From positions 62,001 through 126,000 of the forward strand of contig NW_021832120.1 of NCBI RefSeq assembly GCF_006345805.1: a stretch of 64,000 nucleotides of DNA, written 5' to 3'. The position numbers and the translations under genes were made by a program. Under the pieces are notes generated by a model that was not told where the DNA came from, searched no databases, and saw only the letters and a program-made list of their open reading frames with translations. Positions within the stretch are counted from its first letter, which is position 1. Each line of letters opens with the position of its first letter. Below are positions 7,748 to 51,820 of the stretch, one piece after another. Source of the DNA: Octopus sinensis. Taxonomy: Eukaryota.

Positions 7748-9062
7748 TTAAAGCCAGGAAGGACAGCAGGGACGCCAATCAGTGGGGGGAAATGAGTCGG
7801 AGAGGGAGTTATAAAGGACGACCACAATGGCGAATGCAATAAGAATAGTGGCAGCCACCTTCTTAAGCAAAGCCTCCCAGGGAAGTTGATTCAAGTCAAG
7901 GAGAAGAATACCCATCAACACCCCTACAATAACACCCACCCCTACCAGAAATGAACCCCCCCAAGTGCCCCACATGTCCCTGCCCCGAATTAGGATCAGT
8001 ATAAAAGCGAGTGACAGACACGGAAATGTCGGAGATGACTAGGCTGGTGAGGACTACTCAACTTAGCACTCCCAGGACGACCACCCTGAAGTACCCACTC
8101 ATCAACAGTCTCAGCAGTCCATATTTATTATACGCATTCATTTCCCGCCAATTCTACATTAGGCGGGAACACTACCATAATAACATTGGCCAAATGTGCC
8201 CCCAGGAGAGAATACCCCCCTCCACTGGCCCCCACCAGAGGGTGACCATCCAGAATGGAGTGAGCACACGACCCGGCCAGCACTCCCACAAAGTATATCA
8301 CAATAATCCTCCACTGGTGGACCATTTCGAGAGGAATCCCATACAGCAGTTGATAGACCACATTGAAGACCACATGAGAATACCTGCTGAGGACATATAT
8401 ATACCCCGAGTGGAGGAGCATGTAGGAAATAAACCTCCAGGCCTCATACCTACGATCGGGCACCCAAATGAGTGGAGTGGTGGGGGCAACTCCCCCCTTA
8501 TTGCCACTCACAGCAAAGGGAGTGTCCTGCAGGGTGACCGCGTAGTACACGAATATGGCAATCTGTGTCACCCACACAAATACCTCGATCAGACTAATCA
8601 GGAACATGAAGAGGGGAGGGGGAGAGCAGTGGTAGTACTCCAAGTAGTTCTCCGCCTGGCCCGGCAGTCCCACTGAACTCACAGCCAGATATGTCAGCTT
8701 GTCCACTGTGCTGAGTGTCCTGTAGTCCACATTGTCCTCACATTTGGTCAGCTGCCCAATCGGGGTATATAAGTACAATTTCTCTCAGTTCTTGGTAGCT
8801 TATTTTCTGGTCTTTGTTTTTGTCTGTGGCCAGCAGAATTTGTGCTTTCTGTCGTCGGCTGAGTTGGTTTTTGAGGTTGGGGGCTTTCAGGGTGTTTCGG
8901 ATTGTGCCGATGGGAATGGCCCCCGAGTTCTGCACAAAGAGGGTCTCCACTTTCTAGAATAGAGGGGGGGCTTACTCTGAGGTAGTCGACTGTGTCTTCT
9001 CTTATAAGGAACTTGTCCTTTTCTTCCTTTCGTACTTCTCTCAGAGGAATTGAATTTGACAT
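7748..9062 (-). CDS. Rhomboid intramembrane serine protease (RHBDL1/2/3 type, N-terminal EF-hand)
   Basis: EF-hand-like DKNKDQKISYQE, CSPPPLFM, WRFISYMLLHSG, catalytic GASGG and HVGHLGG, and hydrophobic TM segments. Start MSNSIPL at 9062. Confidence 0.93.
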
Positions 9063-9321
9063 TCGAAACAATCACTGTAAATAAAATTACTTCTATCAAT
9101 CAATTATTGATTGTTATTCAACATTTGCTATATTTATTTTATAATTTTTTAAATACAATAAAAACATAAATATAAGTGAAAATATTTATTTTGTAAAAAC
9201 TTATTGAAAAATGTTTGTAAATATTCCACGGATGTGGTCAGAACCACGATAACAAATTTGTTGTCAATTGATCTAGCCTCAAATTGCTAAGTAATACACA
9301 AACTGAGAGTAAAAATAGACT

Positions 9322-12300
9322 TTAAAAATGTGAATATATGTCACTTTTTGTATACTCGACAACTGCCGTCCTCACTCTGTCAATTGTGCAGCCGCCTATG
9401 CCCATACACTCCCAGTCCCCGTCAGTCAGCAAGGCCAGCTAAGACTAGTCTCACCAATATTGCCTGCTCGACTGTCGTGATGTCATTGGCTGTGAATGTG
9501 TCACAGTAGGTCTCCAAATTGACAGTCCACAAAAACTCCCAAAACTCCATTTCCTTGGGGAGAAAAGTATTTGTTGGAGTGTCGACAAATCTAAGAGTGC
9601 ATATTGTAGGACTAAACTGGTTATAAACTTGGTCAATGCCTTCGTACTGTATTCCATCCAGGAGTGACAAAAGTGTTCGGAAAGAAGGTCTGTCAGTCGG
9701 ATTGGGACTCCAACAGTGCCCAATCATTTTGTAGACAATTTTGGGACAGTTCTGGCGATAAATAAGAGGAAAACAACCACAGGAGGGGGAAGTCTGTATC
9801 CATGACTGACAAGTCTCATCACACATATATTAGACCAGTCAAAGTACGGACTGTCCCCCACTGACAGTACTTCCCAGGACAGCACTCCAAATGACCACAC
9901 ATCGGACATGGAACTGAAGCAGTAGTTCTCAAAACACTCAGGAGCTGTCCACTTGACAGGAATTTTGTCGTTTTTAATGACGAGATGGTCAGAGGAGTCC
10001 TTCAATCGCCGTGCCAGTCCAAAGTCCGAAATCCGGCACCGTCGATTTGCATCCACAAGAACATTTCGAGCTGCCAAGTCCTGAGAATTATTTTGACTGT
10101 CCAACTCTGTGGATCACTCCCTTCTGAGTGAGGTACTCCATTCCGTTGGCCACGTCCCACAAAACCCCAATCATGCCGAGAATTGACAGTCGTGGACAGT
10201 TCTCACAAATAATCAGCCAATCCCACCATTAAATACTTATCCAAGGACTCGTTTGGCATGAACAGGAGGACTATCGACGTGTTGGAAAGTGTGCCGACGA
10301 ATGCTGTTATGTTCGGGTGTGTTAGTTCACTCAGAATTGATGTCTCGTTCACAAAACAAGTGGTTGATTTGATTTTCTTTACTGCCACGTCGTAACATGC
10401 CCCCCCTCGGTATTTTCCACGGAATATTTTGCTTCGATCTCCTATTCAGATAAGGGAGGATGAGACACCGTCAATGAGACACTGTTCGATGGCAATGTCA
10501 CGTGGATTGATGTTGTACTGACTGAGGGACTCGACTTGTTTTGCTATTTCTAAATCCGAACAGTTCCAAGACTGACTGTCCAGGGTTTCTATGTTCTCAA
10601 ATATATATCTACTACTGTAAGCAGCAAAGAGAATGTCTGGGTAGTTGTACCACTGACTATCCGAGGGAATAGTGGATGCACGTGAATATAACATTCTAAG
10701 CATTAACTAGGAGAGAAAGATACTTGCCAGTCCACAAAAGAGCCCCCAGGACGACTACTCCCGACACAACACACCCGGCCACCAACCCAGTCCGAGCCCA
10801 CTTGAGTGCCCGACCCTCTGCAATGCCGTAGACCTGGGCTGAGTATTGACCCAATTAACCTTGATTGTGTACTGTCCGTCATTCCAGAGAGTCAGCTGTA
10901 GCAGGGATTTGGTGGCAAATTTATAGTCCCGCTGACCACAGGCATAGTTAATGGGACAGACGTAGACTTTGATTATTTTGTATATATTATGTAAATTTGA
11001 CAATTCGATGAACACGTCTCCCTGGGTCGCCAAAGTGACATGTTTTATAGCCAGCAAGACCCCTGGAATTAAACACATAATTCTTTACATTCTCCGACTC
11101 GTAGATTTATGCTTAGTTGATTGGCAGTGATCACTTGTTTGGATTTGCTTTTCATTACCGTCAACAGAAATAACTCGGACGTCGCATTTTCAGCAATATT
11201 TGAGAGTGCAACCCTACCCGTCATAAAAGAAAGGAACTTGAATATCTGGGGATATTGGCAGGACGTGTTTCGACCAAGGCAAACTTGTCTCTTTCCATCA
11301 TTGTTTATGCAATGCACTTTGTAGTCCTTCAGGTGCCACATGTCGCGTTCTTCGTTCTCCAGAATAATGACGATGCTGCCGAGTTTATTGTGAAGGACAG
11401 TCAAGTTGAACGAGGGACTTTCATGGGTAGTATCTATCCAATAGTAGTTTGCAGTTCTCACTTATGCAGTACATAGCTCCTTCATCTCCTAGTTTTTGCT
11501 TGAATCCTTCGTCGCAAAGACACTTCGAGCGATTAGTTGGGTGGGATTGAGAATTCGGAGGACACTTAGAACAACCAAAATTTCCCTTATTCATTTTGTA
11601 GTGAGCATTTCCACATACTAAAACCATGACTCTGCCGCAGACAAATATGACAGCAATAAATAAAATTGGCAAATAGTACTCACTTTTGCATGTCTTTGAC
11701 ACTTCGTCCATCTCAAAACCTCTGTCGCAGACACAGGATCCCACAATATTTTCGGGCTCTCCTTCTTTACTGCAGGAATATGAAGGATTCAAATCAGAGG
11801 GAACCGACCCAGAAATACAACGACCGGAGATCTTGAAAATAATATATTTGACACAAACGTGAGTATTGGCTGACATGGCTGAGGGATAGTAAGCAAGTGA
11901 CATTTTAAACTGATTGCACTGCTTGTAATATATTTTGATTTTATGTATGCCAACACATCCCACTTTGTTGACGACGACCAGTCGGACAGTAGGAGAAAAT
12001 GAGTTGAACTCGTGCGTGACAACCACAGTCTTTCCCACAATTCTGCCTCTGTGAATGTTGTTGTACTACCACAATGGTATCAATGATAACCCTGCTTGTT
12101 CTTTTACCGGTTTTGTCGACGATGAAAAATAGCAGTTTCTTTACACACTGTTCCCAATGTTTGAAACATATTTTTGACACGATTGCAGTATCCACGAATA
12201 TTTTATAGCTCGGAGACATGATGGGGGGACTAACAAGCCACGTATTTGTGTCGTCTTCACTCCCCAAATCACAACTGGACATGATTTGTTTCCCCCCGAG

Positions 12301-12502
12301 TTCCATCAAATACCACTATCGTACATTCGTCCTTGACATTAAACCTTAAAGTCATTTGAAGGCCTTAAACTTCTGAAGGAATTAAGCGAGTCCAGCAATG
12401 TCACTAAAAGACAATTAAAGAAATTAAATAGAATAGAACTACAGGCCTGTTTCCTGATCTAACCGCACATCTGGAATCGACTGTCGCATGAATAATGTAC
12501 AT
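9322..12502 (-). CDS. Eph: Eph receptor tyrosine kinase (ligand-binding, Cys-rich, FN3, TM, kinase, SAM)
   Basis: VTLLDS...TNTWLVSP ligand-binding domain; CVCDRGFE and CSKCPPNS Cys-rich region; VAVK, HRDLAARN, DFGLAR, IPVKWTAPE, SDVWSFG; SAM-like C-terminus. The 5' end is approximate. Confidence 0.9.
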
Positions 12503-15491: not shown

Positions 15492-18400
15492 AAAGGTCCC
15501 TCCCCAGTCAGGCCGACCTCAACCTATTTTATCGGAATCAGGGAGCCAAGATTCCTCCAAATTACAACCTCGTGCAGGTATATTAACTTTGAGCTATATA
15601 ACGGAATAACTGATCTGATAATTGTTTGTAGGAGTTTATTTGTATTGCCGAAGATGTCGACGCTACATCTGTCAGATTTCTTCGTACAGAATATCCCCAG
15701 GTTGGTCCCAAAAAGGACTCTCTTAGGACACATCATTGTATGTCTACATAAATGTCTCGATCGACTCCTTCGGGTTGATTTGTAAGAACACGCCTTTAAA
15801 AGGAAAAGATAGGCCGTTCATTAGTCAGAATTTCAGTCTCGTCAGTAATGTAGCAGGTAGTGAGTGTATCAGTGAGATGTGTAGATTTCATCACTATTTG
15901 GAGTGGAAGAGACGTCGTGAAGAGCAGTACTCCACTCAATACAGACAGGATATCAGACAGAGAAATGACAGATCTCAGGGCAATCATGAACATGAGTTGG
16001 GTGTCAGACATTCGAGTAGACTCGGAATATATTCCTGGGACGCTGTTCAAGTGAGCGCGTCAATGATTACGCAGAGTTGCTCTCAAATCTGGAATATTGC
16101 ACCAAATCGAGAAATGGCTGAATGAACTAGAACGAGAAGAAGGACGGGCAATTCTGTTCCTTCTCTCAGTCGAAGTAATGGAGATTTACACGGGGAGTAA
16201 AGAAAACACACGACTTGGCTTTTCTGTGTCCCTCAGTGACCGGTCAGTTTTGGATGTTCGGAAAAAGAGAAAAGTCATCAAAAACCTCCTTTCAAAGCCA
16301 TCCCCTCAAAGCAAGCACGTGATTCGCATGTCTACTACTGTCAGGTCGACTGAAACAGTTCATGAAGACTTTGTTGTAGTTTTTATTATGGGGGAACTTG
16401 AAGAGTTGGGAGGGATTAGGGCTACTTACTCGATGGAGAAGAGGCCCTTCGTTGGGGCCGGTTGTAAGGTCAAGGTCTTTGACTTTGACACGAAGAATGT
16501 CCCCACATTGTACCGCTATGTGTCCATAAAGGACGAGGCCGGATGCGACACGGGCTTTCCAGTTCTACTACACGCCAACTTTTCCGTGAATGATACATCC
16601 AAGACTTTACAACTGAACATTGCCACTCAGACTACATTGAAATATAAAATGAACTCGTCGTGTGCCCGAAACGCCTCTCTTTTGCACGACTGGATACCAC
16701 AAGCTTATATCGGCTTGATCACACATCTTATTGAGCACAAAGTGATCACTCCGTCACAAATATATGCCTTGTTCCCCGACGATCACAAATGGGGCACTAT
16801 TGCCACCATTATTCTCAAGAAGATGGTCAGTTCCAAATCAATTGTGTACATTGATCGTGAAGAAAGTGGTTATTGGACTCACGTCTTGCATGCCCACATA
16901 TTTGATGTGGAGAGTAGTCTGCTTATGAAAGCAATCGTCCTCAAAATTGCCAAAAATTGCCAAGTTCCAATTGCCATGGTTCCTGGGAAAATTTTTAAAA
17001 TAATAAAAATTATACTCGGACCTCAACTACACGCACTCAACCAGAAATCTCTTCGTCCGATTCTCGTTCCTCCTCCCTCGAGTATTTATCACGTGAGGAA
17101 AGGATCCATTTGCTGCGGTTTATCCTCTCGGATAAACTCTTCGGGTAATGGCCACTTTGAATTGTAGGGAACTCGAGGACATTCGACTTTTGCCACTAAA
17201 CGACGACTCTTTCTCGGCCTTTAGTCGGAATGAAAACACTGCCAAGGTCTACGTCAACACGCATTTGTTGGACTCGGAACTTGTCAGTCTGAAAAGTGAA
17301 TTGTTTGTTCATCGCTCTCTTCCCGTCGACATTCAACAAATCCTACACAATGTGGCAATTCTAGGCACTGTCTTGTTCTGATTTAAAAGGTGTCACTCAA
17401 CTGAGTATTTTCAATAATGCCGAACTGCTGCCTTTTACAAAACAACTGATCGATCAGCGATTTTTTGACATTCCAAATTTCTGCATGGATGTTGCTCAGT
17501 GCAGAGATACTCTCAAGTGTCTAGACGTTTTGTGGAGATATGTTCGATCCAATCTCTCCGCTGAACTCAGAAGTTATTCAAGATTTTTGTTTGTGCCTCT
17601 TGTCGACGAGGAACACCGAGTCCACTTTGTTTCGGTCAATTCGAATAAACCGTTTATATCTGCGTCTTATGGAAATCAGACAATTCCCGACCCCGTTTGT
17701 CTGTTCTTGGGCCGGCTCGGAGTAGTCGTAGTGCGAGATCGAACAATAATAGACACGTTGATGAGTCTGAACTCGGTCACCTCCCGACTCATTCATCAGC
17801 CCGATGGAATATTGGATATACTCAGAGAAATAGCTTCGAAGAATAATCCCCAATATATTAGAAGCCGAATACTCAAATTGCCTCAAGACCTCCAAAATGT
17901 GCTGTTGCAATCTCTCATTCGTGGATATCGCAAAATTCCTCAACAAATTTTTTCATTTCTCTCCATAATTGGATTTAAAGACGTCAGTGAGGGACAGTTT
18001 TTAGAGCCAGTCTATCCCCAACACCAAATTGTTGGCCGAGCTGTGTCCGATTTGGAGAGTACCAGTCCCCGTTTTTTAGATTATAAACGAAGAAATGTGT
18101 TGATTTCCAAATCAGGGTCATCTTTGAGTTTCCACGAGTGCATTGACCCGAATGACATGTTCATGAATCAGCTATTTTCTGGGTTGGACGTCTTCATTGA
18201 CGAACGACAGTACAAACCCAATTTCATTGAAAGTATCCGTAAAATTGGATTTAAAACTCGCGAGAAAATCACTGCCGTGGACGTAGTGAAAATAATTTCG
18301 TCTGCAATCTCCTCCCCAATTGAGTTGTACTGCCAGAAAATCGAGAACCTTTACTTGTTTTGAAATCGAATACCAAATTGCTTTTTGAGAAAGTGGACAA

Positions 18401-21400
18401 ACAAGAACTGCAGACTTATTTAGTTTCAGCCAAGTGGTTGAGACATGCAAACCACCGCCCTTCGAAGTATCCGTCGGCTCTGCTTTGGCACGGAGGGGAT
18501 GAAAATCGACTGTATGCTCCATGCAGTCTCCAACAGGAGAAATATTCGTATTTTGTTGGGAGTGTGTTGGGAGTGCACATTTTTGATTTCTCTCCAGAAT
18601 TGGCATTCTTATTGTCCATTGACACGTTTCCTCCATTTGAAAGAATATTCGAACACTACCAAAACATTATAAACCTTCAAGGCGTGGTTGAATCAGACAT
18701 TTTTGAAGATTACATCACAATTTACTATACAAAGTTGATTTCGCATATCCAAAACGGTTTGATTGACTGTTCGAAACACTTTCCGAAAAATTGGTTGTGG
18801 AATGGTTACCATTTTGTTGACTCGAAGACACACTGTTTGTATCTGACCACGTTTTTAAGTCCTTTCACAACCATTTTGCGGAAGAATGCGGTTATGTACA
18901 AAGAGACTGTACATGCATTTTCAGAATACATAAAAAATAAATATTCCAACAAGTCGTTTAACATTCTCCAAGTCCAGACTGATTTATCTCTTATATTTTC
19001 TTCACTGCAGGACTTGATCGACCATACTCCTCCAGAAAGTGTCGTGGAAAGGGAACAGCTTCTGGTCCCCGTGGAGTCAAATGTCTCGGGGAAAATCACT
19101 CTTGTGAGTGTTAAAGAGTTTATCGAAGGACGGACTAGTCCGAGTCCCTCATTTGCTCTACACTCACAATTTCCCGACAAACTTCTACAACAATTGGACT
19201 TGGAAAGATTTGTAAAAACTACTTCTCGCATTGACAAAGACAGTATTCGCCATATCTCCAGACAGATCTTCCGCCTGGCTGAATACTGCGGCTCGTCGAC
19301 GATTAAGATCGTGTACGACAGAAAGATTAGCAAGTCCTTGGGATTTATAAATCATCTTTTTCCAAAATGTGAGTCACTTTGGATATATTACAGTTCTGCG
19401 ATTCCATGCAGCAATTTTGAAATGATTCATTTTCTTAAAAAATTATCACAAACAATTTTCGTCGCAAGTGGAAACAAAATGTTTTTCCACGATTTCTGCT
19501 ATTCCGAAAAGAACCTGGAAATAACTCCCGAGATCACCGTCCTCGAAGATATATTTGTCTTTTTCAAGTCAGATTCAGAGCACAAAAATAGGAATGATAT
19601 ATCTAACTCTGGGACTTTGATATTTTGTCCACTGGAAAATAGAATTCATGAAAATTCTGGCCTCAAAAAAGTGATTTCATTACTCTTTCAAAACATTATA
19701 AAATTGTCTGTCAAAGCAATGTTGTACCTGGATGTGATATATTCAACGTCAATGTATTACAATTGTTCTGACAGCATTCACAAGTCGGAAATTGTCTTTA
19801 ATCTTACAAAATACATCTCCTCAGTCATGCAACCTACCTTGAGGACAAAAAATAAGGAAATACTTGTGCCTTTAAGTAAATTAAAATCTCCAGTCCGTCA
19901 AATCATATCGTTGTACCAGTCTAAAGGCAGTTTTGACGAAGAAGAAAATATTGTCGCTATTTCAATGTTTGACTTCAAAGGAGTAATCACCAAGTTGGGA
20001 AGCAAATTAGTTGGATTTTCCAATATTAAAAATATTGGCGAATGGTTGTGTGCGGTTTCGATTCGTACAGTGATGGTCGACTTCAAGAAAATGTTTTCTG
20101 TGGGTTGTGTGGGAGTTCCTTTCAGTGAAGTCACTGCCACCAATCAAAATAAATCCAAGAGTGAAGACACGATTTTCTCTTCTCTGAAAAGTGAGAAGAA
20201 TGGACTACCCGTTTGCTTGTATGCTGCATTGATGACTACAGAAAACAACGTGATTCATAGCATTCCAGAACACGCGGCCATGTCTAATGACATCTTCACT
20301 GATTCTCTGAGCAATGCATATTTTATTTTCCTGGAATATATCGGCTCTCTGTCCAAGAGTAACCATTATTTTTTTTTCTGGCCTACCAACAATAACTTGG
20401 ACAACAAACATCGCCTGATGACGAGTTGTGTCTATGAAAAACTGTTTTCTGACGTTTCCGCGAAAAATTTGGTATTTTGGGGAGTTGGTCCAACTTCGGC
20501 GGGGATTTCAATATTCGACGACTCAGTTTACGACTGTCCTTTTTACGAAAATATAATTTCTGCCTATGAGAACATCACTAATCGACACGTCGTCAGAAAT
20601 ATTCCAAAACTGATTGTTCAGAACGTAAAAGAAGCAGTCTTCAAGAATTCGAAATGGAATTATATTTTCAGCATTCAGCGCCTCTATCGCGACATCTTTA
20701 TTCCCTCCTTGCATGAAATAGACGCGGAGCTTCGAAATGAACTTGTGATTTATGCTTTGACCACACTTTCCGCCGACTTGGCGTCTCATTTGGAGACAAT
20801 TCCGTGCATTCCAGTCATGAGGGATAAAATAAGACTAGAAGCACCAAAAAACTTGAAGGACCCCATCCTCAGTCTAAAGTTAGCTCAAAAAGGAAAGTTA
20901 TCCTCAGTGGAAGAGACCGACGGGTTATGGGACACAGACAGATTGGAATTTATTTGTTCGATTCGACTGAAAATAAAAAAAGCAAACGAAGTTTCCAAAA
21001 TGCTCAATCAAATTATGCACAACATAACGTTAAATGTTGAATGCCCAAAAAGCATTCGACAAACTATTTGTTTGGCCCCAATAATACCAGTCAAGAATAT
21101 CGCTAATCTTCAGTGTCCCGATTTTGTTAGTTCGAATCAAGCATTCCTTCCTGTTTACGAGTATTGTATTTCGCGGGTAGTTCCAGTGGTTGATCTTGAA
21201 CTTGTCCCGGCGTTGAAAAACGTGGAACTGACCAACTTTCTTTATTTAAATTTGAATGTTCCGTCTCCAGAAATGGTAATTCAGAACTTATTGGAATTGA
21301 AAAAAATTGCTCAGTCAAATATTCCGAGCTCAGTGGATCCAGTAGAGCAGGAGGCTGACAGGATTTACGCATTCCTGGCCGCTTCCTACAACCCTTCGTT

Positions 21401-24400
21401 ATTCGACAAGCTAAAAGACACTCCATGGGTTTACTTCAAGGGAGAGTTCTTGTTGCCTCAATGTCTTTTGTTTACTGGAAGGGTGACTAGTTTCCCGCCC
21501 TTTATTTACAACGTTGTCGGAAGCTATTTGACTAAATATAAAGATTTTTTGCTCAATTTCAATATCAAAACAAACTTCGGGGACCAGGATTACTTGCAAG
21601 TTCTACGCCTTGTAGAAGCGAGTGGACAGAAATTGACAAAAAACAAACTTGAGCATGTTGTGAGGTTCATTTCCGAGTTGGTAAATGAACTAATTTTGCT
21701 TCGAATTGATCCAGTCGAGTATCAAATAGTGAATGGGCCAATTCCATTGCCCGACACGACTGGGCACCTTGTCCCAAGTTCTTGTATTTTATTTGACGAC
21801 TGTCCACGTATATATCACTCTTCAAACCCACTCCTTCATAAAATGATCCATTTATCGATTGCTAACTCCCTGGGCGTTAAAAAGAAGAGTGCCGATATTT
21901 TTCAATTGGAGATGTTCAGTTGTGCAGTTCCCCGCGGGTTAATCAATTTGAAATCCAAATCGGAAACTCAGCACTTCATTGTGTTCTTGAAAAGATTAAT
22001 GTCATATTTTGCACAAATGAAATGTTCCAACATTTTTGTCAGACTTGACTGTCGTAATCATTTCCCTGAAAACTTTTTGGATGACTGTGGGAAGCTTTTG
22101 GATCCATGTTTGTACTTTCGCGTGAATAGAGTGATTACAGATCCCCAAATAACCGATTTCCTAGAGAAATTGAAACTAACTCAAATCCATAATCAAGAAA
22201 AGACTGGGCTTTCTTGTTCTCTAGAATTGTTCCATTTTGTTTCGGTGTATTCGGTCGACGGAAATGATTGGTCTTTTTTTACTATAGAATATTTATTTAA
22301 AGATGGAGAAATCACCAGTAGAGTTATCAAAAAATACAAGAACACTGCACTGTTGAATAAATATTACCCGAAACTACTAGATATATTTGATATTGGCTTG
22401 CCTTGCACATTTCCCACAACATTTATCCGTTTTCGATTAAATTCAGACGAAAATATTCAAATGGTCAGGATTGCCTTAGACGAGTTCCGAGACATAGTTG
22501 TTGAGAAAATCATTTTAATGGAACCAATTCAGGTCGTTTCTGTTGACTGTATCGACATTGACGGCAATTTGAGTGATTTATATTCTGTCTCTGCTACTTT
22601 CAATACTCCCGATTCAAAATCTTACGAAAGGTACTGCAGTCGACTCAGCAAAGACCGAAATGAATACTACAGCGGAAACAGGTCTCTAATAAGCAAGGAC
22701 TATTGCACTTATGCAGTGTCTGTAACTCTCACCAACCAACGTATTTCCAATTACTCGTGGCTATGTTGTTCTATGCACGGAACTGATTCCAAAGTTTATT
22801 CCAAACACACCAATCAGCAAAACAGAAACGAATCATTTCCCCACATAAATGTGGCAGTGAATTATGAGACCAACTATTGTCAGATTAAGAATTCAAGTTT
22901 ATCTCCCGCAAGGATACTGATTGGTGGAATGACTGTCGATGAAGATTTCGAGGCAACTTATCTTGGCTCGGAAAAAATGACTGCTCTAAGTTTGACTGTG
23001 GACGCGTATCTGCTGATAATGGATGAGATCAGAACTCGTGTATGTCTCACAAGTGACTTGACTCGTGATTATTGGCGATATTTTCCCACTGTCGACAATT
23101 GTTATTTTGTGGATGACGACTGCACTGAAGAATTCCTATCTGATTTCTACAATTTTTTGGTTGATTCTGTTGCATATTTCCCATATTTGAACCAGGAGAG
23201 AAAACAAGTCGAGTTTATATCGTCTCGGGCTTTATTTTTTTACGATTTAAACCAAAATTTGGACAATTTTTCTATTCTTCAGAATTCTTTGGACAGTTGG
23301 GGAGTTCACTTGATAAATGTCACGAGTTGTATGAAAAATGACCTTCCAAAGAAAATTCTCCAAAATAGATGTTTTACATTCGAGAATATTCTGAAATATT
23401 TTGAAAAGTATCCTGAAATGCCGGTATTGGATCTTTCTTCAGAGAATAAAATTGTGACGGATTTGTCAAATATTCTAAATTATTTCATTTCTCAAAGTCA
23501 ATGTAAAGTTGACTTGTGCGGAACTCCTTTTATGTTTACCGCAGATTCCACAATGCAGATCGCAGACTACCAAATGCCCAAATATTTGTTTGAGTACAAC
23601 GAACTGTTTGGAGATTGCCAAAATATGTTTGTTCATTCAAAAATGCTCGAAATTTACACAAATCCAAAGTTTAGATTTTCTAAAATATTTCGTGAGTTTG
23701 ATCCCGAAGACCTAAGTTTATGTCTTTTGAAAAAACATGAAAGGTCAGGTACCAGTCCGTTCTCCACCGACGAACTTTGGACAATGTGGAATATAATTGA
23801 CTGTGTCTTCATTGATTATTCAAAGAAAGTCGATGTGAACGATAAGGACGCACTAATTAATTTATTCACTGCAGAATTTCGCAATATTGACCGTCTGCCT
23901 ATTGTGCCTGTTTTAATCAAAAACTTGGATAACAAAATGGAAAAACACTTTTTGAGCATTTCAGATCATTCGGAGATTTTTATAATTCCCGAAGAAACGA
24001 ACGAGTCAGTAAAAGAGTTTATTGAGAACTCTGGAATTAGCCAACTTGCCAAACCATGTTCTGACTTGTGGTCCTTTTCCCAGTTGGTCCACTCGGTTGA
24101 CGACCTGTCCTATTTTGAAAACTTCCTGAAACTAATTGAGAGGTCTACTCCCACTTACCAACAACTTGTCCCATTGCTCGGACATATTTCCTATCTTCTC
24201 AGCCTCGCCAAAAAAGAGGACTGTGACCAGGCTCGCACTCTTTTGTTAGGCCACGCAATATTCCCTCTTTTTGATGGCTCTATTTGCATGCTTGGGAAAC
24301 GATTGGCATACATTTACTCAGGAACTGACATTCCTGCAACAGAATCCTCGACTTGGTGTTGTAGTTCAGAAGTGGCTCTCCTTGGTTTTGAATTATTCCA

Positions 24401-27400: not shown

Positions 27401-27612
27401 CATACGACCTTAAGGACCAGACGCTTATGGACTACGCCAAAAAATTGGAAAAGCTGAAATATCGGAACTTTAAAGGACTTTACCCAGAAAAAGAAATTCC
27501 CCACGAAACCGTAACAGTAGAGCAAGGACAAGAGGCAGTGCTCTTTGCCCAAACATTGTTTGACTATATCAGCTCAACATATTTTTGTGAATCTTCTGTG
27601 GATTCGACTTAA
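15492..27612 (+). CDS. SACS: Sacsin-like giant protein (three degenerate Hsp90-like repeats, J domain, HEPN)
   Basis: Sacsin-repeat remnants EFICIAEDVDATSVRFL (15632), PGTLFK and ELEDIRLLPLNDDSF. J domain KKLMLRWHPDKNP (HPD at 26862-26870). HEPN WMRQAKADLE...EWMAFIACQ|SAEKVLKAAY, with last intron 27288-27315. The true start may lie further upstream (ATG 15171). One or two apparent frameshifts. Confidence 0.92.
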
Positions 27613-35312: not shown

Positions 35313-36657
35313 ATGGCGTTCTACTTTCATTTTCTTTATTTTTTGTATGGAATTTCCAGCAAAGTATATCTCCAGGACAAAATAACAAGTATTTTAAACA
35401 CTGATATATTTCTCTAGGCACATGGGAAGAACAGTGGCAATACCCCACAAACAAAACGGAGATCGGGACGTTCACCTTCTTCAACGGCACAGAAGAGTCC
35501 AACTACACAAACAGCGGTAAAATGCCTGCCATCATCAAAGGTCTCAAAACAAGCACTGACAACAAGTTCTACACCCTGTCCCGAAATTTTGAAAACAATT
35601 TCAAATTGGGGGAGAATTCGTTCGTCCTGCAATATTCCGTGGTGAACACTCAGAGTCTAAAGTGTGGTGGAACATACCTGAAGGTTTTCCCCGCAGGAAT
35701 GGACCTCCGATCTATAAATAGCGACTCTGAGTACGTCCTGATGCTCGGTATTCCGGTTTGGTTTATTGCAGGTCCTGACACATGTGGGTCGACCAATTTG
35801 ATCCACGTGATTTACAGATATAAAGGAGTCAACAGACAACTCAAGAATATAATAGATCACCACGTAGAATAGTCCTGTCATCCAGTAGGATCACACAGGA
35901 GGGCATGTTTACACGTTTGTGGTGGAAAGGGATCTTAAATACCGTGTTTTTGTCGACGGAGAGAATAAGACAAGTGGGAATCTCTGGGAGGACTTGGATT
36001 TGGGGAGTGATGCCAAGATGATTCCGGTTTGGCGTGTTTTGTGACTGGAGGACCCCACGGCAGAGAAGCCTGGTGATTGGGTGGACGAGGAGTACATTGA
36101 GGACCCCAAGGCAGAGAAGCCCGACGACTGGATGATTCCGAAAGTCAAGCCTGAGGACTGGGACGATGCATTGGATGGAGACTGGGAAGATGATATGGTC
36201 AAGAACCCTAAATATATTGTTCTGTTTATGGGGTGATGTGCAGGGTTCTTGGGAACCAGGCAGAATTCCCAATCCGAAGTATCATGGCGAGTGGAAGGCC
36301 CCTTTGATTCCTAATCCGGACTTTGTTGCTGATTCCGACTCGTTATTTGTCGATTTGGGGTCTCTGGCTGTCGAGATTTGGCAGGTTTGCACGTGTTCTG
36401 GTTTATCTATCAGGTGGATGCGGGGTCAGTGTTTTCCAACTTTTTGGTGACTGATTCTGAGACTGACGCCCTTTCCATTGCCCGAGAATTGGCAAATAGT
36501 TTTAAGGCTTATCTAATTTTTTTATTTTCTGTAGGAATTGAAATCAGTGGAAAAATCTAATGAATTCGAGGAGGCAGGGGATGACAATGTGTCGGACGAG
36601 GATGTTAGTTTGGATGACAGTTCGGTAGAGGATATTAACATTACCGAGGAATTGTAA
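35313..36657 (+). CDS. CALR: Calreticulin
   Basis: Signal peptide; [28 protein letters not shown]-like region; P-domain repeats [33 protein letters not shown]; EIWQV; acidic tail ending TEEL*. Needs a GAG-acceptor intron (36027-36050) and a GC-AG intron (36507-36534). Confidence 0.93.
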
Positions 36658-40290: not shown

Positions 40291-40454
40291 CAGTGCTGGT
40301 AGAAAAAAACCGGTTTTGCAGTTAATAATTTTTTTTGGCGTATAGCTATTAATTTTCTAAATGAATGTATAATCTTTTTTACTTTAAAAAATTTCAATAA
40401 TCGGCGGAAATTTTAAAAATTTAAATTTTTGCTTGTGAATAAAAAACCGGTTTT
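40291..40454. repeat. Tc1 left terminal inverted repeat with outer and inner direct repeats
   Basis: Palindromic core AAAACCGGTTTT at ~40303-40317 and ~40441-40454. Confidence 0.9.
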
Positions 40455-42983: not shown

Positions 42984-44218
42984 TTATGTGTAGATAAATA
43001 ACCATCGCAAAGTCTCTGGGAGTGTCTGAGTCGAGAAGTGGATCAGAATGTAGGAGGACAGCTTGTCGACGAACGTGGACACTTGAGAGAGGAGGGAAAG
43101 AGCTTCACTGAACTTTTCTCGATGGACATGCCCCTCGTAAATGTAAGAAAAATATTTCTTTAAACACAACAAATATTCATTCTCAATGTCCGCCAACCCA
43201 TTGACGTTCCCCTAAAATAGCTGAGCAAAGTCAACCAGACTGTCCACAAGGATGATGAGCATGATAGTGCAAAAGAAGAGAATGAAAGTCGTGTTGTACC
43301 CATCCACAAGCGTGTACAGTCTCTTGGTGACAACACAGAGGTTGGGAAATAGCTGGGCACCATTTAGTTCGTCCTGAACTATAATTGGACTAAAAGACCT
43401 TCAGAGCTGCAAATTTCAAGAAATGGCAAGGGAAATTCCAGCCTTTGATTTCTGGAGTGAAAAGTTTGAATGCGCGGAGGAACGTTCTAGTGATGATAAA
43501 CTTGTTGATAGTGTCGATAGGAATGGCGGAAAGGTGTGCCTCGATGGGGAAAATACCGGAGACAAACTCGGGTATGGGCAGGGACTGTACTTTAGTAATC
43601 AATTTGTGGTCGAATTCGATCTTGAGACGTATTAGCCTGTCGACGTCAAAGCAGTTTATTTTGTTGGGGTCGGTGACGTCACCGTTCACTTTATGGAAGA
43701 GTTCGGTCAATTTTTTAATCATATTCAACTAGGAGTGAGGGACACGACTCTCACGTCAGTCTCAGTCAGCATTCGTCTGTTTGAACTGCTGTCAAAATGT
43801 TGCGGTATTTCCGACTGAGTGGTGGAATTTAAGCACCAACCTGATTTAGGTTAGCTTGGATACGAGAGAGAGTTCGCTGGTTTCTCCTGTTCTGCACTTT
43901 TTCGTTCCTCACTCGTTTTTCCTCGTCATCTGCCAGCTGGACACACAGCAGGCTAACTGAGAATCATATCCGACTTCATTCCGATGGCAATGCACTTTTT
44001 AAGTCGGCAATGCTGACAGAACCTCCTCGTCTGGACGGTCACCTGACACACATTCTCAAACTGACAGTTGTTTATCTACTTGTCACTCAGTCCCTCACTT
44101 GTTTCTTGGCATTTCTACGGAAAAACGCCTTGCAGGACTCGCAGGACACGACTCCGAAATTACACCCTATCGCCTCGTCCCCACATATCTGACAATCTCG
44201 CCTTTTCAAGCTCGCCAT
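42984..44218 (-). CDS. Hr96: Nuclear hormone receptor, NR1J (HR96/DAF-12/NHR-8-like), DBD plus divergent LBD
   Basis: MASLKRRDCQICGDEAIGCNFGVVSCESCKAFFRRNAKKQ|INNCQFENVCQVTVQTRRFCQHCRLKKCIAIGMKSDMIL|NDEEKR. P-box CESCKA. The C-terminal IENEYLLCLKKYFSYIYEG...LPETLRWLF resembles the HR96 LBD helices 10-12. The DBD is missed by the ORF track because introns split it. Confidence 0.9.
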
Positions 44219-44386: not shown

Positions 44387-46170
44387 TCAGTGTTGGTAAA
44401 GAAGGAGAGGACTAAGACAGACGGGACACGTCTTTTTGATGGCAGACCACTGACGGAGACAAGCCAGGTGGAAGACATGTGTGCAGTAGAGGTAGCACGA
44501 ATCAGCCGATTCCAAGTCATCGATACAAATCGAGCAAATATTACTCCTCCGATCCAACTGCTCCTGGGAAGCCCGTGGAAGACTGTTACAAAAAGTATTG
44601 ACCCAATTCCTGTCCCACAAATAATTAAATACTTGATTGCCCTACAACTCAGCCACTCAACACCACCTTCATATATATATTAACATATATATGCAGAAAT
44701 ATAGTCAGCAGTCGGAAAATGCCTCCTTTCCGGTAGAGAGTGAGCACAGCAGTACACAAAAGCAACACTCCCAACAAATACTTGACCCCCTCTCCCACTC
44801 CACTCACCACAAAGTCCACCGTCGACCCAAACTCCGTCAACGTCCCCCAATAACGCTTATAGTAGTAATAACTCAACACACACAGCATAGCCAGGGCAGA
44901 CACGTCGTTCTACACTCAAACCACTCAGTACCTCCAACACCAGAATCACCATGGTGAATAACCAGGCATCCCTCGCCCGGGTAAGCACAAGATATACCCC
45001 AGCCATTGTCGACAGTATCAAAATGACAATCGCGGAAATAAACGGACGGACATCGGAGAGAGGGATGTATGTATAACCTCCACTCTCCTGCAAATATGTC
45101 TTCATTATCTCGTGGAGTAGAAACAGTGTGTTGAGAAGAAGCAACCACGTATTGTTCTGCAGTAAAGGCAGTCTTTCCCTAAAGAATAGAACTATCAGTA
45201 CTCACGTGAGAGGAATGGAAGGGACTTGATTGACCAGGGACATCCACACCACGAATATTCCATAAAGAAGTTCCAAAACCCCGGTTATGTCCGAGTCCAC
45301 TCCACACAGTCCCAACAACTTGGTAAAAAACAATCCACAATACGAACAGAAGGTGGAAAATGAGAATATTTTGATATAACTCGACGTGAACTCGCCCAGG
45401 ACGACACTCAGGCCAGTCAGAGTGAACAAATCAGTCCAATTGGCCATTTTAGTCCAGGGGATGACCACACAGGCCAGGAATCCGTACAATCTGAGGGCAC
45501 TCACATTGTTGGACATTGACAAATTGACCAAATCTATTTGGAAGGACAAATCAAACTGCAGGGAAATTGGGAAATAATCAAATGACACAATTCGACCCAC
45601 AAAATCACCCAAAGACCGAAAATCGAGTTCAAAAAACCAGAAAATGAGCAATCCGTTACAAGCAAGGGAGAAAATGGAGAATAAATTAGCACAAGCCAGC
45701 CAAAATGGACTCCAATTGGGAGGGAGGAGGACAGCCAGGCCAAACAATACAAATAAAGTGAGTCCCAGTTTGTGGAGAGACTCAATTGAGGGGGAATGAG
45801 TGTTGAGAGGGTGGGACAGTACGACGAGCATAAGGAGGAGACAGAGGACTGAGATGACAGCACAGAATGAGGGGATGGTCGAGCACAGGGGGGATATGTC
45901 CCTGCAAATGTGATTGATTGTAGTTAGTAGGAAAATGGACATCATTTGTGTGTAGAATGGGTAGATGGAGGACATTGGTTTACAGAAATAAAGAATGGTG
46001 AGGATAATGAGGTACATCTTGAGGAAGAAGGGGAATAGGGTGTCCAGTAGAGGAGGCAGGGTTTGGGGTAGCATGTAGTGGACTACCACGTTGTCATCCA
46101 GGTTGCTCATGTGCTCCAGAAAATAGATTAGTGGGAGTTTTACGATGGATTCACATAGGTTATTTAGCAT
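44387..46170 (-). CDS. RNF139 (TRC8)/RNF145-type polytopic ER E3 ubiquitin ligase with RING-H2
   Basis: N-terminal LCESIVKLPLIYFLE (TRC8_N-like), many TM helices, FLHIYVNIY, NSLPRASQEQL, and RING-H2 CSICIDDLESADSCYLYCTHVFHLACLRQWSAIKKTCPVC. Confidence 0.85.
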
Positions 46171-46540: not shown

Positions 46541-46554
46541 AGCCAAGAAAGAAG

Positions 46555-47745: not shown

Positions 47746-47847
47746 ACGAGCAATTGTAGGTCTCTATAGTACAAATAATAAAGCATTAAAAATATATAGG
47801 AATATAATTGATATTATTTGTCTAATTTATTAATAATAAATAAAATA

Positions 47848-47890: not shown

Positions 47891-49114
47891 ATGGCTGCCA
47901 GCGAGGAAATATGCGAGAAAATACCAAACCTGGACGTGGCGAAGTGGATTTTCGAGCTAAGCAACACCCCCAACTACGAGACAGCCCAAAAACTGCACTC
48001 CACCCTCGTGGAAAAAGGCAGAAACCCCAACTAACCTCCCAGACATGTCTCTATTCTACCAAACAGCCTGCCGTACACTGAACTGGACAGAAGACGAGGC
48101 AGTCTTGTCAAAAATGAAAAAGAACAACGCCAAGACAATTTCCGACCTGGAAAACGAACTCAAATTCGCCACAGAAAACCTGGGAGAAGTGGAAATCAAA
48201 AAAGTAAAATACAAAAAAGCGAAATACCACGCCTCAATCGGAGACAGAGTAATTCCTCTCCTCATGCTTAGGACAGTGCCCTGGAAGTGCTCGAGTTGTT
48301 GTTGGAGGGGACCAACACGGTGGGACAGAACTTGCAGTACCACTTCCTGATGATGCGAATATACTTCTTCTACCTGGAGAGTGAGAATATGCGGGCAACC
48401 ATCGAACGGGCACAAAAGTGAGTTTAATTCCTCATTTGTAGGTTTGTGGAGGACGCTGGGGACTGGGAACAGAGAAACCGTCTCAAGATTTACCGTGGAC
48501 TTTATTTACTCACAATCCGCGACTTCCGTGGAGCTGCTGACTCATTCCGTGACGGAGTGTCCACATATACGAGCACGGAGTTGATGGACTATGGGGAGTT
48601 TGCGACATACACGATATTCTCGTACGTGTTTGCCTACGACCGGCGGGAAATGAAGAAGGACGTGATCAAGTCCTCGGATATCCAGGAAGCCCTGTTCGAC
48701 CTGCCTTTGCCACGGGAGTTGTTCAATTCCTTCTACCAGTGCCACTACAAACAGTTTTTTGTGTTGTTGGGGGAGACGGAGGAGTTTATGAAGAAGGACA
48801 GATATTTGCGGCCTCACTACTCCCACTATGTGAGCCACGTCAAATTGAGGGCGTACAAACAGTTGTTGGAGGCATACTCCAGTCTGTCCATCAAGTACAT
48901 GGCCGACCTGTTTGGGGTGACCGAGGAGTACATTGACAGAGAACTGTCCATGTATGTGGGGTGTGGCAAACTTCAATGCAGTATCAATAAAGTGGAAGGA
49001 ATAGTGGAGACCACCCGGAAGGACGACCGGAGTGTCCAATATCACAATATTATTCGACTTGGCGATAAATTGCTGAATCGAATACAAAAACTCAGTCGGG
49101 TTATTAATCTCTGA
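47891..49114 (+). CDS. PSMD6: 26S proteasome non-ATPase regulatory subunit 6 (Rpn7)
   Basis: DMSLFYQTACRTLNW, NLGEVEI, DAGDWEQRNRLKIYRGLY and the PCI-domain end CSINKVEGIVETTR...LLNRIQKLSRVINL. The first intron is GC-AG (48018-48042). Confidence 0.95.
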
Positions 49115-49154
49115 TTGTTCTCTCTAATTCTTTTCCCAACAAAAGGAGTGTTTA

Positions 49155-50431
49155 TTAGTCACATGGAATAGACAGACAGGTCTCGTCAAAGCTCACTCTC
49201 GGGGGAGGACGACGGAATTTTTCCAGTTTGAACTCGGAACATAAAATAATCCGCTTTTCTCCACCAACACACTTAATTAGTTTCATTTCCTGTAACGTCG
49301 AGATCAAATCCTTGGGACTGATCCCAGTCTTGTAAGCCATATCCAAATATCACTCCACAATACCATTTATACACAACCGACGAGACTCCCCTCGTCCATC
49401 CAACCACTCAACCACCTTCCACCTCCAATATGCCCTGTAGGCGTGCAGTCCGTGGTCGGAAATGGGCTTCTCAGGTGTGCCCGTAGTCCCCTCCAGGCGG
49501 GTGAGAGCATAGCCTGAATGAGGAAGGACAATACTCAGTTCAATGAGGAGTCTGCCCAAACCAGTCCTCTGTTGGTGGGGCATCACCAGAATGCAGGACA
49601 GGTTGTACTCAGAACACTTCTCCTTTGAGAAATACCCCAGAAAGTGACACCCCCCTCTCACCAACACATAGAAAAGGAAGGGTTTCACGTCATAAATCAA
49701 CGTTTTGTGTCCAATCAACAATTTGGCCACCAAACAAAGTCGCTGACAGTACACCTGGGACTTGTTTCCGTCCACCTCAAACACGGAAAGGTCATCTTTG
49801 CGGTATATCTCATCCCCCGGCGGATTCCCTACACATTTGGTCTGCCTGGTCACTCTCACACACTCACGTGATGTCGCTGGTAGGCACACAAATCGTCCAT
49901 CAGTTTGAAACAGAACTGGCAGACGTAGAGGAGGGAGGACTGGCTGACGTTGGGAGGGAGGGGAGCCGAGTACTGCACATCCATCAGCCAGTCCCCCACC
50001 TGGATTTGTCTCAATGTCCCCTTCTGGCACTCCACGTAGGCCTGAGTGGAGAATTGGCAGTACTTTATTGTTGCTGGCCAGGATTTGTGCCTTGCGGAAG
50101 AAGAGGAGTGTGTTTGGGGAGGAAAGGTTCTCCAGGAGGGGTTCCCTGTCCTGGCTGTCCTCACTTCGAAGGTTTTGGAGGTCTGCCTGCCCCAACTGCC
50201 AGTCGAGGATATCGTCGTAGTACTCACGTGAGCGATTGAGTCTTGTGACCACATCTCCTCGGATGTTTAGAATTCTCTTTCTTTATATATAAATACTACT
50301 TTGCACTGTGATGTGGAGAGATTGTGGAAGAGGGGACATTCTGGTGGGTGTCTGTGCTTCATACTTCTCCCGTTCATGTGTCCTTTCGAGTCACACCCTA
50401 CTACTGTGCACGTGTCATCCACTGTCGTCAT
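49155..50431 (-). CDS. KAT7: MYST histone acetyltransferase KAT7/HBO1-like
   Basis: N-terminal C2HHC finger CTVVGCDSKGHMNG...CPLFHNLSTSQCK. MYST domain PPGDEIYRKDDLSVFEVDG, HKTLIYDV, NLSCIL and GTPEKP (catalytic Glu). Confidence 0.9.
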
Positions 50432-50565
50432 TGCCACACAAGAACAACTAATAATCAATTATTATAAATAAATTTTATATAATTTAACCAGTTTAAAATA
50501 TTTAAAATAAATCAATTAAATATATTAAAAACAGTTGTTGAGTTAGAAATAGGAATTAGAGAATA

Positions 50566-51820
50566 TCACTGTTGTATCACACATATTTTGCCACTCCTCT
50601 TCCTCATTTGTTTCTTCCTCTCCTTCTCCTGCCACTTCTTATTGGCCACTCCATCATCCTGAAGAGACTGCAACTCCCTCTGTCTCCTCTCATCCCTCCT
50701 CTTCTGGTCCTTCTCCTGTCGCTGTGAATAGTTCTGTCTGGACACAGCCTCCCTCAACTTGTCCCTCTTCTTCTCAGCCTTCATGGCCAACTCCTTGCCC
50801 AGTCTAGTCCGACTGACCTTCTCACACAAACACATAACCAAGTCACACATCCCCCACAAGTCCCCCTCCGTGTCCACACATGTCACCACCACCACCCTCT
50901 CCCCCTCCTCACTCAACACTCCCACCAATTCACTCACAGTCTTAGTCCCCCCACTCAACTCCATGCTGTGTCCCACGTATGTGTCCGATATGTGGATACT
51001 CTCCACCCAGGGGGATACTCTTCGGAAGGCACTGGCCACTCTCTGGTCGAATATGAGGGGCACCAGTTCACTGTTCTCGCTCACACATCCAAACTCGGAA
51101 GGCAAGATGTCCAGCTTCTTTGGACTGCAGAAAAATGCCTTTTTATTATTTGTATTTATTACAATGTCTGGATATTTATTTGATAATTCTTTTATTTTAT
51201 TTTGTCTTGATATTGCGAAAACCATTTTGTCCATTTCTTTTAGAGTGGCGACCATAGTCTGCAAATAAACTGGCGGGAATATCTACAATTGTGTCATGTC
51301 TTTTAGTGCCCACTTTCTGTCTAACCACCGACACCAAGTCGTGCCTTTTGACCAATTCAAGGCTGAGGACAAACTTCTGAATAACACAATTGCCACTACA
51401 CCACAACAAATAAACGTGGTCACTCTGCTTGACCCACTCCTCTCCCTCATCCCCTACCAAAATCCACTTCTGGCCATACCCACGTGGGAGAAGCGTTCTT
51501 TGAAGTAGGGAATGACGTCACTGAGGACAGAATTGGCTATTGCTGTGTTGGCATCACTCCCGTTGAGATAGGAGAGCAAATAAAGGAGTATTATGAGTAG
51601 TGAAATGTACTCCACGTAGTACTCAATCCAGGCATGCACTGCTGGGTGATTTGTGACCAACACAGTCTCGTCATATGGCTGGGTTGTGGGGGAGGACTCA
51701 CTTATCTGGTCCTCTATTTGATACAGCACAAAGGAACTAACCAAAATCGTCAAAATCGACATCTTCGAACATGTCTTGTGCTCCTATTCCCACTGAGAGT
51801 ACAACCAGGTAAAAGAACAT
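50566..51820 (-). CDS. CCDC47: PAT complex subunit CCDC47
   Basis: Signal peptide, acidic stretch, TM (YYVEYISLLIILLYLLSYLNG), HVYLLWCSG, LELVKRHDLVSVV and a C-terminal charged coiled coil ending WQEKERKKQMRKRSGKI. Confidence 0.88.

Follow-up and report, generated by a model that had tools for sequence, protein, structure and literature searches.

Opposite strand skews within genes of a probable dicyemid contig: a compositional switch anchored near the gene 5' end

Introduction

Why should the two ends of one gene carry opposite strand biases? The question is raised by a 64,000-nt stretch of DNA (hereafter the window; matched through an identical protein to NCBI GCA_006345805.1, contig VCDQ01000515.1 of 378,693 bp, about 62001-126000) from the Octopus sinensis assembly, in which GC-richer genes are separated by AT-rich spacers and the overall GC content is 38%. 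In nine of the 14 genes modelled there, the coding strand is rich in C and A towards its 5' end and rich in G and T over the remainder. What produces such opposite skews has been debated ever since their description in fungi, and here they appear with very high contrast in an animal. A preliminary description of the locus had read the pattern as a ramp with its inversion at the centre of a gene-sized unit, in which each strand would be single-stranded for some time in its 3' part. We find instead that the pattern is oriented by the direction of transcription, anchored at the 5' end of the gene and limited to certain genes.

Strand skew inside nine genes

The genes were modelled with a dynamic-programming gene finder that combines codon log-odds, introns of the GT/GC..AG type and an intron-length prior. 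The 14 resulting models were curated by hand and with tblastn, and their identities are backed by Pfam. The models are our own and do not define transcription start sites (TSS); distances are counted from the ATG. Skew is expressed as the keto-minus-amino difference, K-M, that is (G+T)-(A+C), and the gradient at third codon positions as rho, the Spearman correlation of G/T use with 5'-to-3' position. The nine skewed genes are listed here with their rho and, for most, the position of the switch in sign described further below.

6925..7610, minus strand: ALYREF-like gene with an RRM and a FoP C-terminal domain (Pfam RRM_1, 5e-13); rho +0.16; cumulative K-M minimum about 444 nt from the ATG (near 7166)
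7748..9062, minus strand: rhomboid (Pfam Rhomboid, 1e-15), with five introns of 22-25 nt; rho +0.24, p 1e-6
27868..28922, minus strand: THOC3 (Pfam THOC3 beta-propeller, 1e-28); rho +0.30, p 6e-8; switch near 28521, 401 nt from the ATG
32170..34108, plus strand: TBC1D23-like gene, at 1939 nt the longest skewed gene (Pfam Rhodanese and TBC1D23_C); rho +0.21, p 2e-7; switch near 32589
35313..36657, plus strand: calreticulin, CALR (Pfam Calreticulin, 3e-56), start exon curated by hand; rho +0.20, p 6e-5; switch near 35605
44387..46170, minus strand: RNF139-like RING-finger multipass membrane gene of 1784 nt (Pfam zf-RING_2, 3e-10); rho +0.23, p 4e-8, and at fourfold sites +0.31, p 2e-7; switch near 45760
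47891..49114, plus strand: PSMD6/RPN7 (Pfam RPN7 and PCI); rho +0.18, p 4e-4; switch near 48264
49155..50431, minus strand: KAT7 of the MYST type (Pfam MOZ_SAS, 7e-56), which tblastn with KAT7 homologues stretches to about 49173; rho +0.21, p 2e-5; switch near 49935
50566..51762, minus strand: CCDC47 (Pfam CCDC47, 3e-27); rho +0.18, p 6e-4; switch near 51468

The skew is real and strong. All ten of the hand counts of G and C in 60-nt lines given in the preliminary description reproduce, exactly or within the '~' attached to them. Along the top strand, C and A prevail at the left end and G and T at the right end for genes of either orientation, as had been claimed; this holds for each of the eight genes originally named and also for the ALYREF-like gene. 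Over all sites of these nine genes, the right third exceeds the left third in top-strand K-M by +0.15 to +0.46. In 443 background windows of 1300 nt outside the genes the mean difference is 0.005 (SD 0.088), and seven of the nine genes lie above at least 99.8% of these background values.

The gradient is seen most clearly at silent sites. At third codon positions it is present in nine of the 14 modelled genes (rho +0.16 to +0.30, p 2e-2 to 4e-8), and the keto-versus-amino correlation at fourfold sites is positive in every one of the nine (+0.14 to +0.31), with p<=0.05 in seven. When third positions of the nine genes are pooled, GC skew moves from -0.41 in the second decile of the gene to +0.36 in the eighth, and TA skew runs parallel to it, from -0.32 to +0.42. 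G and T thus move together, as the preliminary description had expected of a deamination-type (C>T, A>G) strand asymmetry. In single genes the same course can be followed: the coding strand of rhomboid is C/A-rich over a 5' domain at about 8762-9062 and G/T-rich over the remainder, with K-M of -0.43 in the first 300 nt and +0.30 in the last 300 nt, and CCDC47 has a GC-skew rho of +0.33.

Introns follow the trend too, as had been noted earlier: the pooled GC skew of intron cores in the nine genes goes from -0.60 to +0.53. The first intron of rhomboid holds one G and nine C, its last nine G and no C; the intron GC-skew rho of the ALYREF-like gene is +0.74; and the intron rho of PSMD6, whose GC-AG intron 1 is very C-rich, is +0.45. 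The bias may extend past the stop codon. The 3' untranslated region (UTR) of the ALYREF-like gene, taken down to an AATAAA at ~6770, is G/T-rich on the coding strand (K-M +0.35), and the other 3' UTRs range from +0.07 to +0.21, with poly(A) sites guessed from the few clear AATAAA motifs.

Codon positions 1 and 2 shift in the same direction as position 3, by far less. Codons 100-350 nt into the gene (5' domain) were compared with those from 700 nt onwards (distal part) within each codon family: all 21 synonymous families shift distally to G/T-ending codons (Cochran-Mantel-Haenszel chi2 260, p 2e-58, odds ratio 4.2). Amino-acid usage changes as well, the distal part being richer in W, V, G and M (log2 +0.6) and the 5' domain in N, Q and T (log2 -0.4 to -1.0). 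Since silent families and introns shift and positions 1 and 2 do so far less, amino-acid composition is not the cause, and the earlier exclusion of amino-acid selection holds. Amino-acid usage is dragged along by the pressure that makes the skew and is not its source. To conclude mutation from the introns, as the preliminary description did, reaches further than the data: selection on nucleic-acid composition is a second possible reading of the same shift.

Unskewed neighbours and spacers

The five remaining models serve as controls.

9422..12306, minus strand: receptor tyrosine kinase, RTK (Pfam PK_Tyr_Ser-Thr, 7e-71); rho +0.01
15965..27612, plus strand: sacsin-like giant gene of about 3815 aa with a weak C-terminal DnaJ match; rho 0.00
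42984..44218, minus strand: nuclear receptor, NR, HR96-like (Pfam zf-C4, 2e-21), without monotonic skew; rho -0.03
51963-52474, minus strand: calmodulin-like gene, non-skewed
59865-60785, plus strand: open reading frame (ORF) of a transposable element (TE), non-skewed

None of these five shows a gradient at third codon positions; the HR96-like gene had already been singled out as not fitting, and this is borne out. The sacsin-like gene, most of which is a single open frame of 2992 codons at 18324-27299, is AT-richer, with a GC content at third codon positions (GC3) of 0.43, and is flat at both ends (K-M -0.01 in the first 300 nt, -0.05 in the last 300 nt). The 3' end of the RTK gene lies 359 nt from the rhomboid start codon and has a K-M of +0.02 over its last 300 nt.

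The reset at AT-rich spacers, another element of the preliminary description, is also found. Over the 150 nt that precede the ATGs, GC content is 15-29% and skew almost vanishes; in coding orientation these stretches are slightly G/T-rich (GC skew +0.03 to +0.32).

A switch at a fixed distance from the start codon

The position at which the skew changes sign was taken as the minimum of cumulative K-M at neutral sites. Measured in 12 genes that span 498-1939 nt, it falls at 405±108 nt from the ATG and does not depend on gene length (slope 0.02, r 0.09, p 0.79). Expressed as a fraction of gene length, the switch has a mean of 0.37, which differs from 0.5 (t-test, p 0.018), and falls to 0.22-0.23 in the two longest genes. 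The metagene aligned on the ATG shows the shape of the profile. K-M is small over the first 100 nt (-0.10), falls to -0.38 at 100-300 nt, crosses zero near 420 nt and then levels off at about +0.3, a plateau that extends from about 800 nt to the gene end. The strongest C/A bias therefore lies inside the coding sequence, 100-350 nt from the ATG. The plateau, at about the same height, is visible in the 1.8-1.9 kb genes: the TBC1D23-like gene is negative in 150-nt bins up to 450 nt and then stays between +0.12 and +0.44 over a G/T-rich stretch of about 1.5 kb, and the RNF139-like gene similarly levels off after its switch.

We compared four-parameter sigmoid models of the profile by leave-one-gene-out negative log-likelihood (NLL) in the 12 genes. 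The ATG-anchored sigmoid gives 3462.6, with a midpoint at 455 nt and a width of 101 nt; the sigmoid scaled to gene length gives 3469.9; the stop-anchored one gives 3535.0, 72 units worse than the ATG-anchored; and the null model gives 3606.9.

The profile thus switches about 0.4 kb from the 5' end, to which it is anchored, and then stays level; it is not the ramp with mid-unit inversion that had been proposed. The symmetry of the top strand is merely apparent, because most skewed genes are only about 1.0-1.3 kb long. The 5' anchoring, taken with the flat profiles of the non-skewed neighbours, makes the pattern transcription-oriented and gene-specific.

Two mirror-image domains

GC3 is about 0.55-0.60 in both the 5' domain and the distal part, and the two differ in which strand carries the C. 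Third-position frequencies are A.26, C.40, G.20 and T.13 in the 5' domain, and A.13, C.22, G.36 and T.29 distally, an almost exact complement. The non-skewed host genes have A.24, C.24, G.21 and T.30. Compared with them, the 5' domain has lost T (-0.17) and gained C (+0.16), and the distal part has lost A (-0.12) and gained G (+0.15). As C replaces T early and G replaces A distally, the extra GC of the GC-richer genes is strand-specific. This is equivalent to a single A:T-to-G:C pressure acting on A of the template strand early in the gene and on A of the coding strand later.

The domains differ in homopolymer runs as well. Runs of four or more C occur 6.3 times per kb in the 5' domain against 2.3 for G; distally the figures are 2.0 for C and 7.0 for G. 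Pairing of the C/A-rich 5' part of the mRNA with its G/U-rich 3' part finds no support, as specific 5'-3' complementarity shows no excess over shuffled sequences (z -2.0 to +1.2).

The pattern on other contigs and its relation to GC3

Eight further loci of ~21 kb on other contigs of the same assembly, reached via TE paralogues, were analysed with the same gene finder. They are mostly TE-rich and contain only about 5 usable host genes. The gradient recurs in three host-type genes whose introns are tiny: L002 18216-19161 (rho +0.30, p 1e-8), L002 20358-20855 (rho +0.31, p 3e-5) and L006 6718-8097 (rho +0.31, p 2e-12). A 5'-truncated helicase gene in L009 is G/T-rich all along, as expected of a distal part. 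The gene at L002 15427-16861 is an apparent exception; its model is 5'-truncated, and C/A-rich coding-like DNA lies upstream at about 14650-15100. The TE ORFs at these loci have rho near 0.

Across 34 ORF models, the strength of the gradient increases with GC3 (Spearman 0.49, p 0.003), and among them no model with GC3 < 0.49 shows a gradient.

Possible causes

We give about an even chance to a transcription-oriented, strand-asymmetric bias of mutation or repair that would be coupled to RNA polymerase II (Pol II) in a subset of host genes. Judged from base composition, the cause would be transcription, the bias mutational and not selected, and the affected genes expressed in the germ line: GC3-rich genes of housekeeping type, presumably transcribed there. 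About 100-400 nt past the start codon, the coding strand has more C and less T, and from about 0.5 kb to the gene end it has more G and less A. Both could reflect one pressure of the A:T-to-G:C type, acting first on the template strand and, further into the transcription unit, on the non-template strand, if the strand preference of the bias differs between an early-elongation zone and a productive-elongation zone and reverses about 0.4-0.5 kb in. The same pressure would shift amino-acid usage too. In yeast, transitions of Pol II factors and of the polymerase C-terminal domain (CTD) take place at a fixed few hundred nt from the TSS, whatever the gene length.

Several points weigh against this explanation. 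The ATG-anchored sigmoid beats the length-scaled one by only about 7 log-likelihood units in 12 genes. The NR and calmodulin-like genes are GC3-rich and yet lack the pattern. We know of no mechanism that gives preferential template-strand A>G near promoters. Finally, a near-exact mirror composition is easier to obtain from one process of reversed polarity, such as antisense transcription or resection, than from two polymerase phases.

A more specific reading, which we hold to be quite unlikely, is a single strand-specific germline A>G (plus C>T) process that moves from one strand to the other at a set distance, ~0.4-0.5 kb, from the promoters of expressed genes. The template strand would be the target first, for example through an antisense polymerase close to the promoter or through resection of breaks centred on it, and the non-template strand after. 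If such a strand swap were true, promoter position and the boundary between early and productive elongation would be readable from DNA alone, two mirror-image domains would be reshaping codon and amino-acid usage in an animal, and the fungal 5'/3' skews would gain a much higher-contrast system in which to find their cause.

Among the rivals of the Pol II-coupled bias, selection on nucleic-acid composition ranks first, 5'-proximal antisense transcription second and promoter-centred break resection third.

Selection on the nucleic-acid composition of the transcription unit, an extension of the adaptive hypothesis of McLean & Tirosh, is possible but unlikely. A start rich in C and A would work against R-loops or RNA structure, or make the polymerase slower, and a G/T-rich remainder would favour R-loop-assisted pausing or termination between genes that lie 40-360 nt apart. 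The confinement of the pattern to transcribed GC3-rich genes, where it ends at the spacers, is consistent with this, as are the very tight gene spacing (the stops of PSMD6 and KAT7, for instance, are 40 nt apart), the threefold excess of C-runs of four or more in the 5' domain and of G-runs distally, and the fact that an adaptive model, based on limitation of cytidine triphosphate (CTP), has already been proposed for fungi. However, preference for or avoidance of C alone leaves the pairing of A with C and of T with G, and the mirror-image frequencies, unexplained; skew is weakest (K-M -0.10) in the first 100 nt, where RNA structure would be expected to affect initiation most; the G/T plateau fills the whole gene body and not a terminator region; and 5'-3' RNA complementarity is no greater than composition predicts.

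In a second alternative, which we judge improbable, a single process of non-template A>G and C>T has its polarity reversed by antisense transcription that starts about 0.4-0.5 kb inside the gene, so that antisense transcription dominates the 5' domain and sense transcription the DNA beyond. This would account for the near-perfect complementarity of silent-site composition between the domains and for the fixed distance of the switch from the 5' end. Sense transcription also crosses the 5' domain, however, so that antisense transcription would have to be the stronger of the two there in all skewed genes; an internal promoter signal was not seen, though no search aimed at one was made. Convergent sense/antisense transcription is the sole cause listed in the preliminary description that is compatible with the data, and only in this 5'-proximal form.

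Meiotic double-strand breaks (DSBs) in promoter spacers are a distinctly improbable source. Their 5'-to-3' resection would expose the template strand as single-stranded DNA over the first few hundred nt of the gene and deplete it there of C and A, and the distal G/T enrichment would come from ordinary transcription-associated bias. In the flanks of human DSB hotspots, C and A are lost from the single-stranded side and the peaks lie off-centre (PMC7615360), and the skew described here is likewise weakest beside the spacer, with a peak at 100-350 nt. Recombination could raise GC as well, and upstream spacers are slightly G/T-rich in coding orientation. The mirror domain that breaks predict upstream is missing, however: K-M is +0.02 at the RTK 3' end and -0.43 inside rhomboid, and the NR 5' end, beside the RNF139-like 3' end, has the wrong sign. 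Informative junctions number one or two, a few at most.

At the sacsin/THOC3 junction, the flat 3' end of the sacsin-like gene stands beside the strongly skewed 3' end of THOC3. The one-sided junctions at rhomboid/RTK, sacsin/THOC3 and NR/RNF139 argue against models centred on the spacers, whether replication origins or termini or DSBs with resection; promoter-centred resection is kept as a minor candidate for the 5' domain only. A general skew by fork direction is excluded, given that the 11.6-kb and 2.9-kb genes and the TE ORFs are unskewed and that the skew resets at gene boundaries.

Gene-sized replicons, amplicons or linear or circular molecules ending in the AT-rich spacers, the leading idea of the preliminary description, are hardly credible. 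The idea fits the passage of every skewed gene from C/A-rich to G/T-rich on the top strand in either orientation, with a reset at the spacers, and extrachromosomal circular DNA has been reported from developing dicyemids. Against it stand the anchoring of the switch at the 5' end and not at the centre, the plateau in place of a linear ramp, and the neighbours of 11.6 kb and 2.9 kb that are entirely without skew; somatic molecules, moreover, would not shape germline sequence. Resected ends of a gene-sized unit fail on the one-sided spacer junctions and on a profile that is not antisymmetric about the gene centre. The earlier interpretation is therefore partly supported: single-stranded exposure that is gene-sized and strand-symmetric is not, as the switch keeps its distance from the ATG whatever the length of the gene.

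Least credible of all is amino-acid composition or translational codon selection (hydrophilic N-termini with hydrophobic C-termini, or a codon ramp), which explains some local extremes, such as the C-terminal RGG box of ALYREF and, at the 3' end of rhomboid, transmembrane helices rich in Gly and Val, and is refuted as a sufficient cause by the stronger shift at position 3 than at positions 1 and 2, the intron cores and the synonymous families.

Origin of the contig and other features of the window

The contig is most probably dicyemid DNA co-assembled with that of the host Octopus sinensis, which is an inference and not a proof. It draws on the tiny introns, the GC content, the divergent metazoan genes and the collection of Dicyema japonicum from O. 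sinensis. The modelled introns in the window are 22-32 nt long, and animal introns this short are known only in D. japonicum and myxobolid myxozoans (PMC13644364). D. japonicum, collected from the O. sinensis renal sac, has 36.7% GC and a genome rich in long interspersed elements (LINEs) (PMC6736024). The nuclear receptor, receptor tyrosine kinase and calreticulin are clearly metazoan by Pfam. The proteins of the window are very divergent: a search with a KAT7 fragment for proteins of the same organism returned only matches of 40-62% identity, the upper range for any database match, and no annotation to borrow. The literature that we searched on dicyemid genomes and short introns does not mention skew.

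LINE fragments are present on the contig, and retroelement-derived ORFs lie at 59865-60785 (plus strand), 38267-41500 and 46490-47830. The first, of 306 aa, has paralogues of 59-82% identity on many contigs of the same assembly, and its microsporidian matches (Hamiltosporidium, Vairimorpha, Nosema), annotated as reverse transcriptase, are 42-58% identical. This odd distribution may reflect a widely shared or horizontally moving element family. Several RefSeq entries named 'uncharacterized protein LOC1152… [Octopus sinensis]', on contigs of 26-509 kb, are paralogous TE ORFs of such contigs and are probably mislabelled parasite sequences.

Two introns are predicted by our own gene models to start with GC and not GT: PSMD6 intron 1 (about 47990-48015), GCAGAAACCCCAACTAACCTCCCAG, and the last intron of CALR (about 36490-36520), GCTTATCTAATTTTTTTATTTTCTGTAG. 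PSMD6 (plus strand) and KAT7 (minus strand) are convergent genes with stops 40 nt apart (49114-49155), and AATAAA is absent within 400 nt downstream of either, so that their 3' UTRs must overlap or be extremely short. The start of CCDC47 is uncertain by about 80 nt (51762-51850): the DNA upstream of the modelled ATG is not AT-rich, and an alternative ATG about 80 nt upstream would give a signal-peptide-like N-terminus, MFFYLVVLSVGIGAQ….

By eye, further coding-looking frames can be made out in AT-rich DNA: a pepsin-like frame at 650-1430 (minus strand), a lysine-rich H1-like frame at 4491-4796 (plus strand), a papain-like frame at 29869-30410 (minus strand) and a long low-GC gene at 53300-58000 (minus strand). 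The GC-trained gene finder gave no models for these four, and the statistics leave them out.

The skew signature could aid the annotation of gene starts and orientation in dicyemid genomes, where introns of 22-30 nt defeat standard gene finders. Analyses of codon usage and protein composition in such genomes are confounded by position along the gene.

Comparison with known systems

Work by Green in 2003, Touchon in 2004 and Polak & Arndt in 2008 reportedly found, on the non-template strand of animal genes, an excess of G+T and of A>G over T>C. This transcription-associated asymmetry is also referred to in PMC3315797 and PMC2927911. The distal 60-80% of the skewed genes resembles it, in that coding-strand G exceeds C and T exceeds A, in introns as well as silent sites, mostly because G stands in place of A, and in being restricted to a subset of genes. 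The resemblance begins only beyond about 450 nt (K-M +0.2 to +0.4), and at 100-400 nt the sign is reversed (K-M -0.38). The amplitude, with skews of 0.3-0.6, is far larger than that said to occur in mammals.

Gradients of another kind follow the time that DNA spends single-stranded. Those of vertebrate mitochondrial DNA are linear in exposure time. The flanks of DSB hotspots (Hinch et al. 2023, PMC7615360) share with the genes described here a loss of C and A on the single-stranded strand, off-centre over hundreds of nt. Unlike such patterns, which are symmetric about a break or linear in exposure, the skew in the window is anchored at gene 5' ends, is not mirrored upstream and reaches a plateau.

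An excess of C over G near the 5' end also recalls the C-skew at the TSS of plants, fungi and invertebrates (Tatarinova 2003; Fujimori 2005, PMC555766; Aerts 2004). The peaks of that skew are centred on the TSS or 5' UTR, whereas here the flank and the first 100 nt show hardly any skew, the domain runs to about +400 and C is accompanied by A.

The closest counterpart is found in fungi. Most unicellular fungi favour C on the coding strand at the 5' end of their genes and G at the 3' end, fourfold sites included (McLean & Tirosh 2011, PMC3315797). The proposed causes were mutational, through phase-specific cofactors of Pol II or excision repair, or adaptive, through CTP limitation, and the choice between the two stayed undecided (PMC3315797). 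The likeness covers the 5' C and 3' G of the coding strand, the fourfold sites, the presence in many but not all genes, the bias of amino-acid usage between gene ends and the link to transcription (PMC3315797). The differences are equally definite. TA skew flips with GC skew here, whereas AT skew is flat along fungal genes; silent sites are clearly above positions 1 and 2, whereas the fungal magnitudes are similar; the promoter or 5' flank is unskewed, whereas the fungal C bias is strongest at the promoter or 5' UTR; and the genome is that of an animal, with a switch at a fixed ~0.4 kb and a plateau after it. What is new, then, is the joint flip of TA and GC skew, the mirror-image domains and the boundary ~0.4 kb from the 5' end. 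Together these features narrow the mechanisms to a strand-specific A:T-to-G:C process that reverses polarity early in the transcription unit, and the strand specificity of the GC-richness, C in the 5' domain and G distally, argues against a strand-blind cause such as plain GC-biased gene conversion. The pattern belongs to the fungal kind of intragenic skew, of which it is a strong animal version with defined differences.

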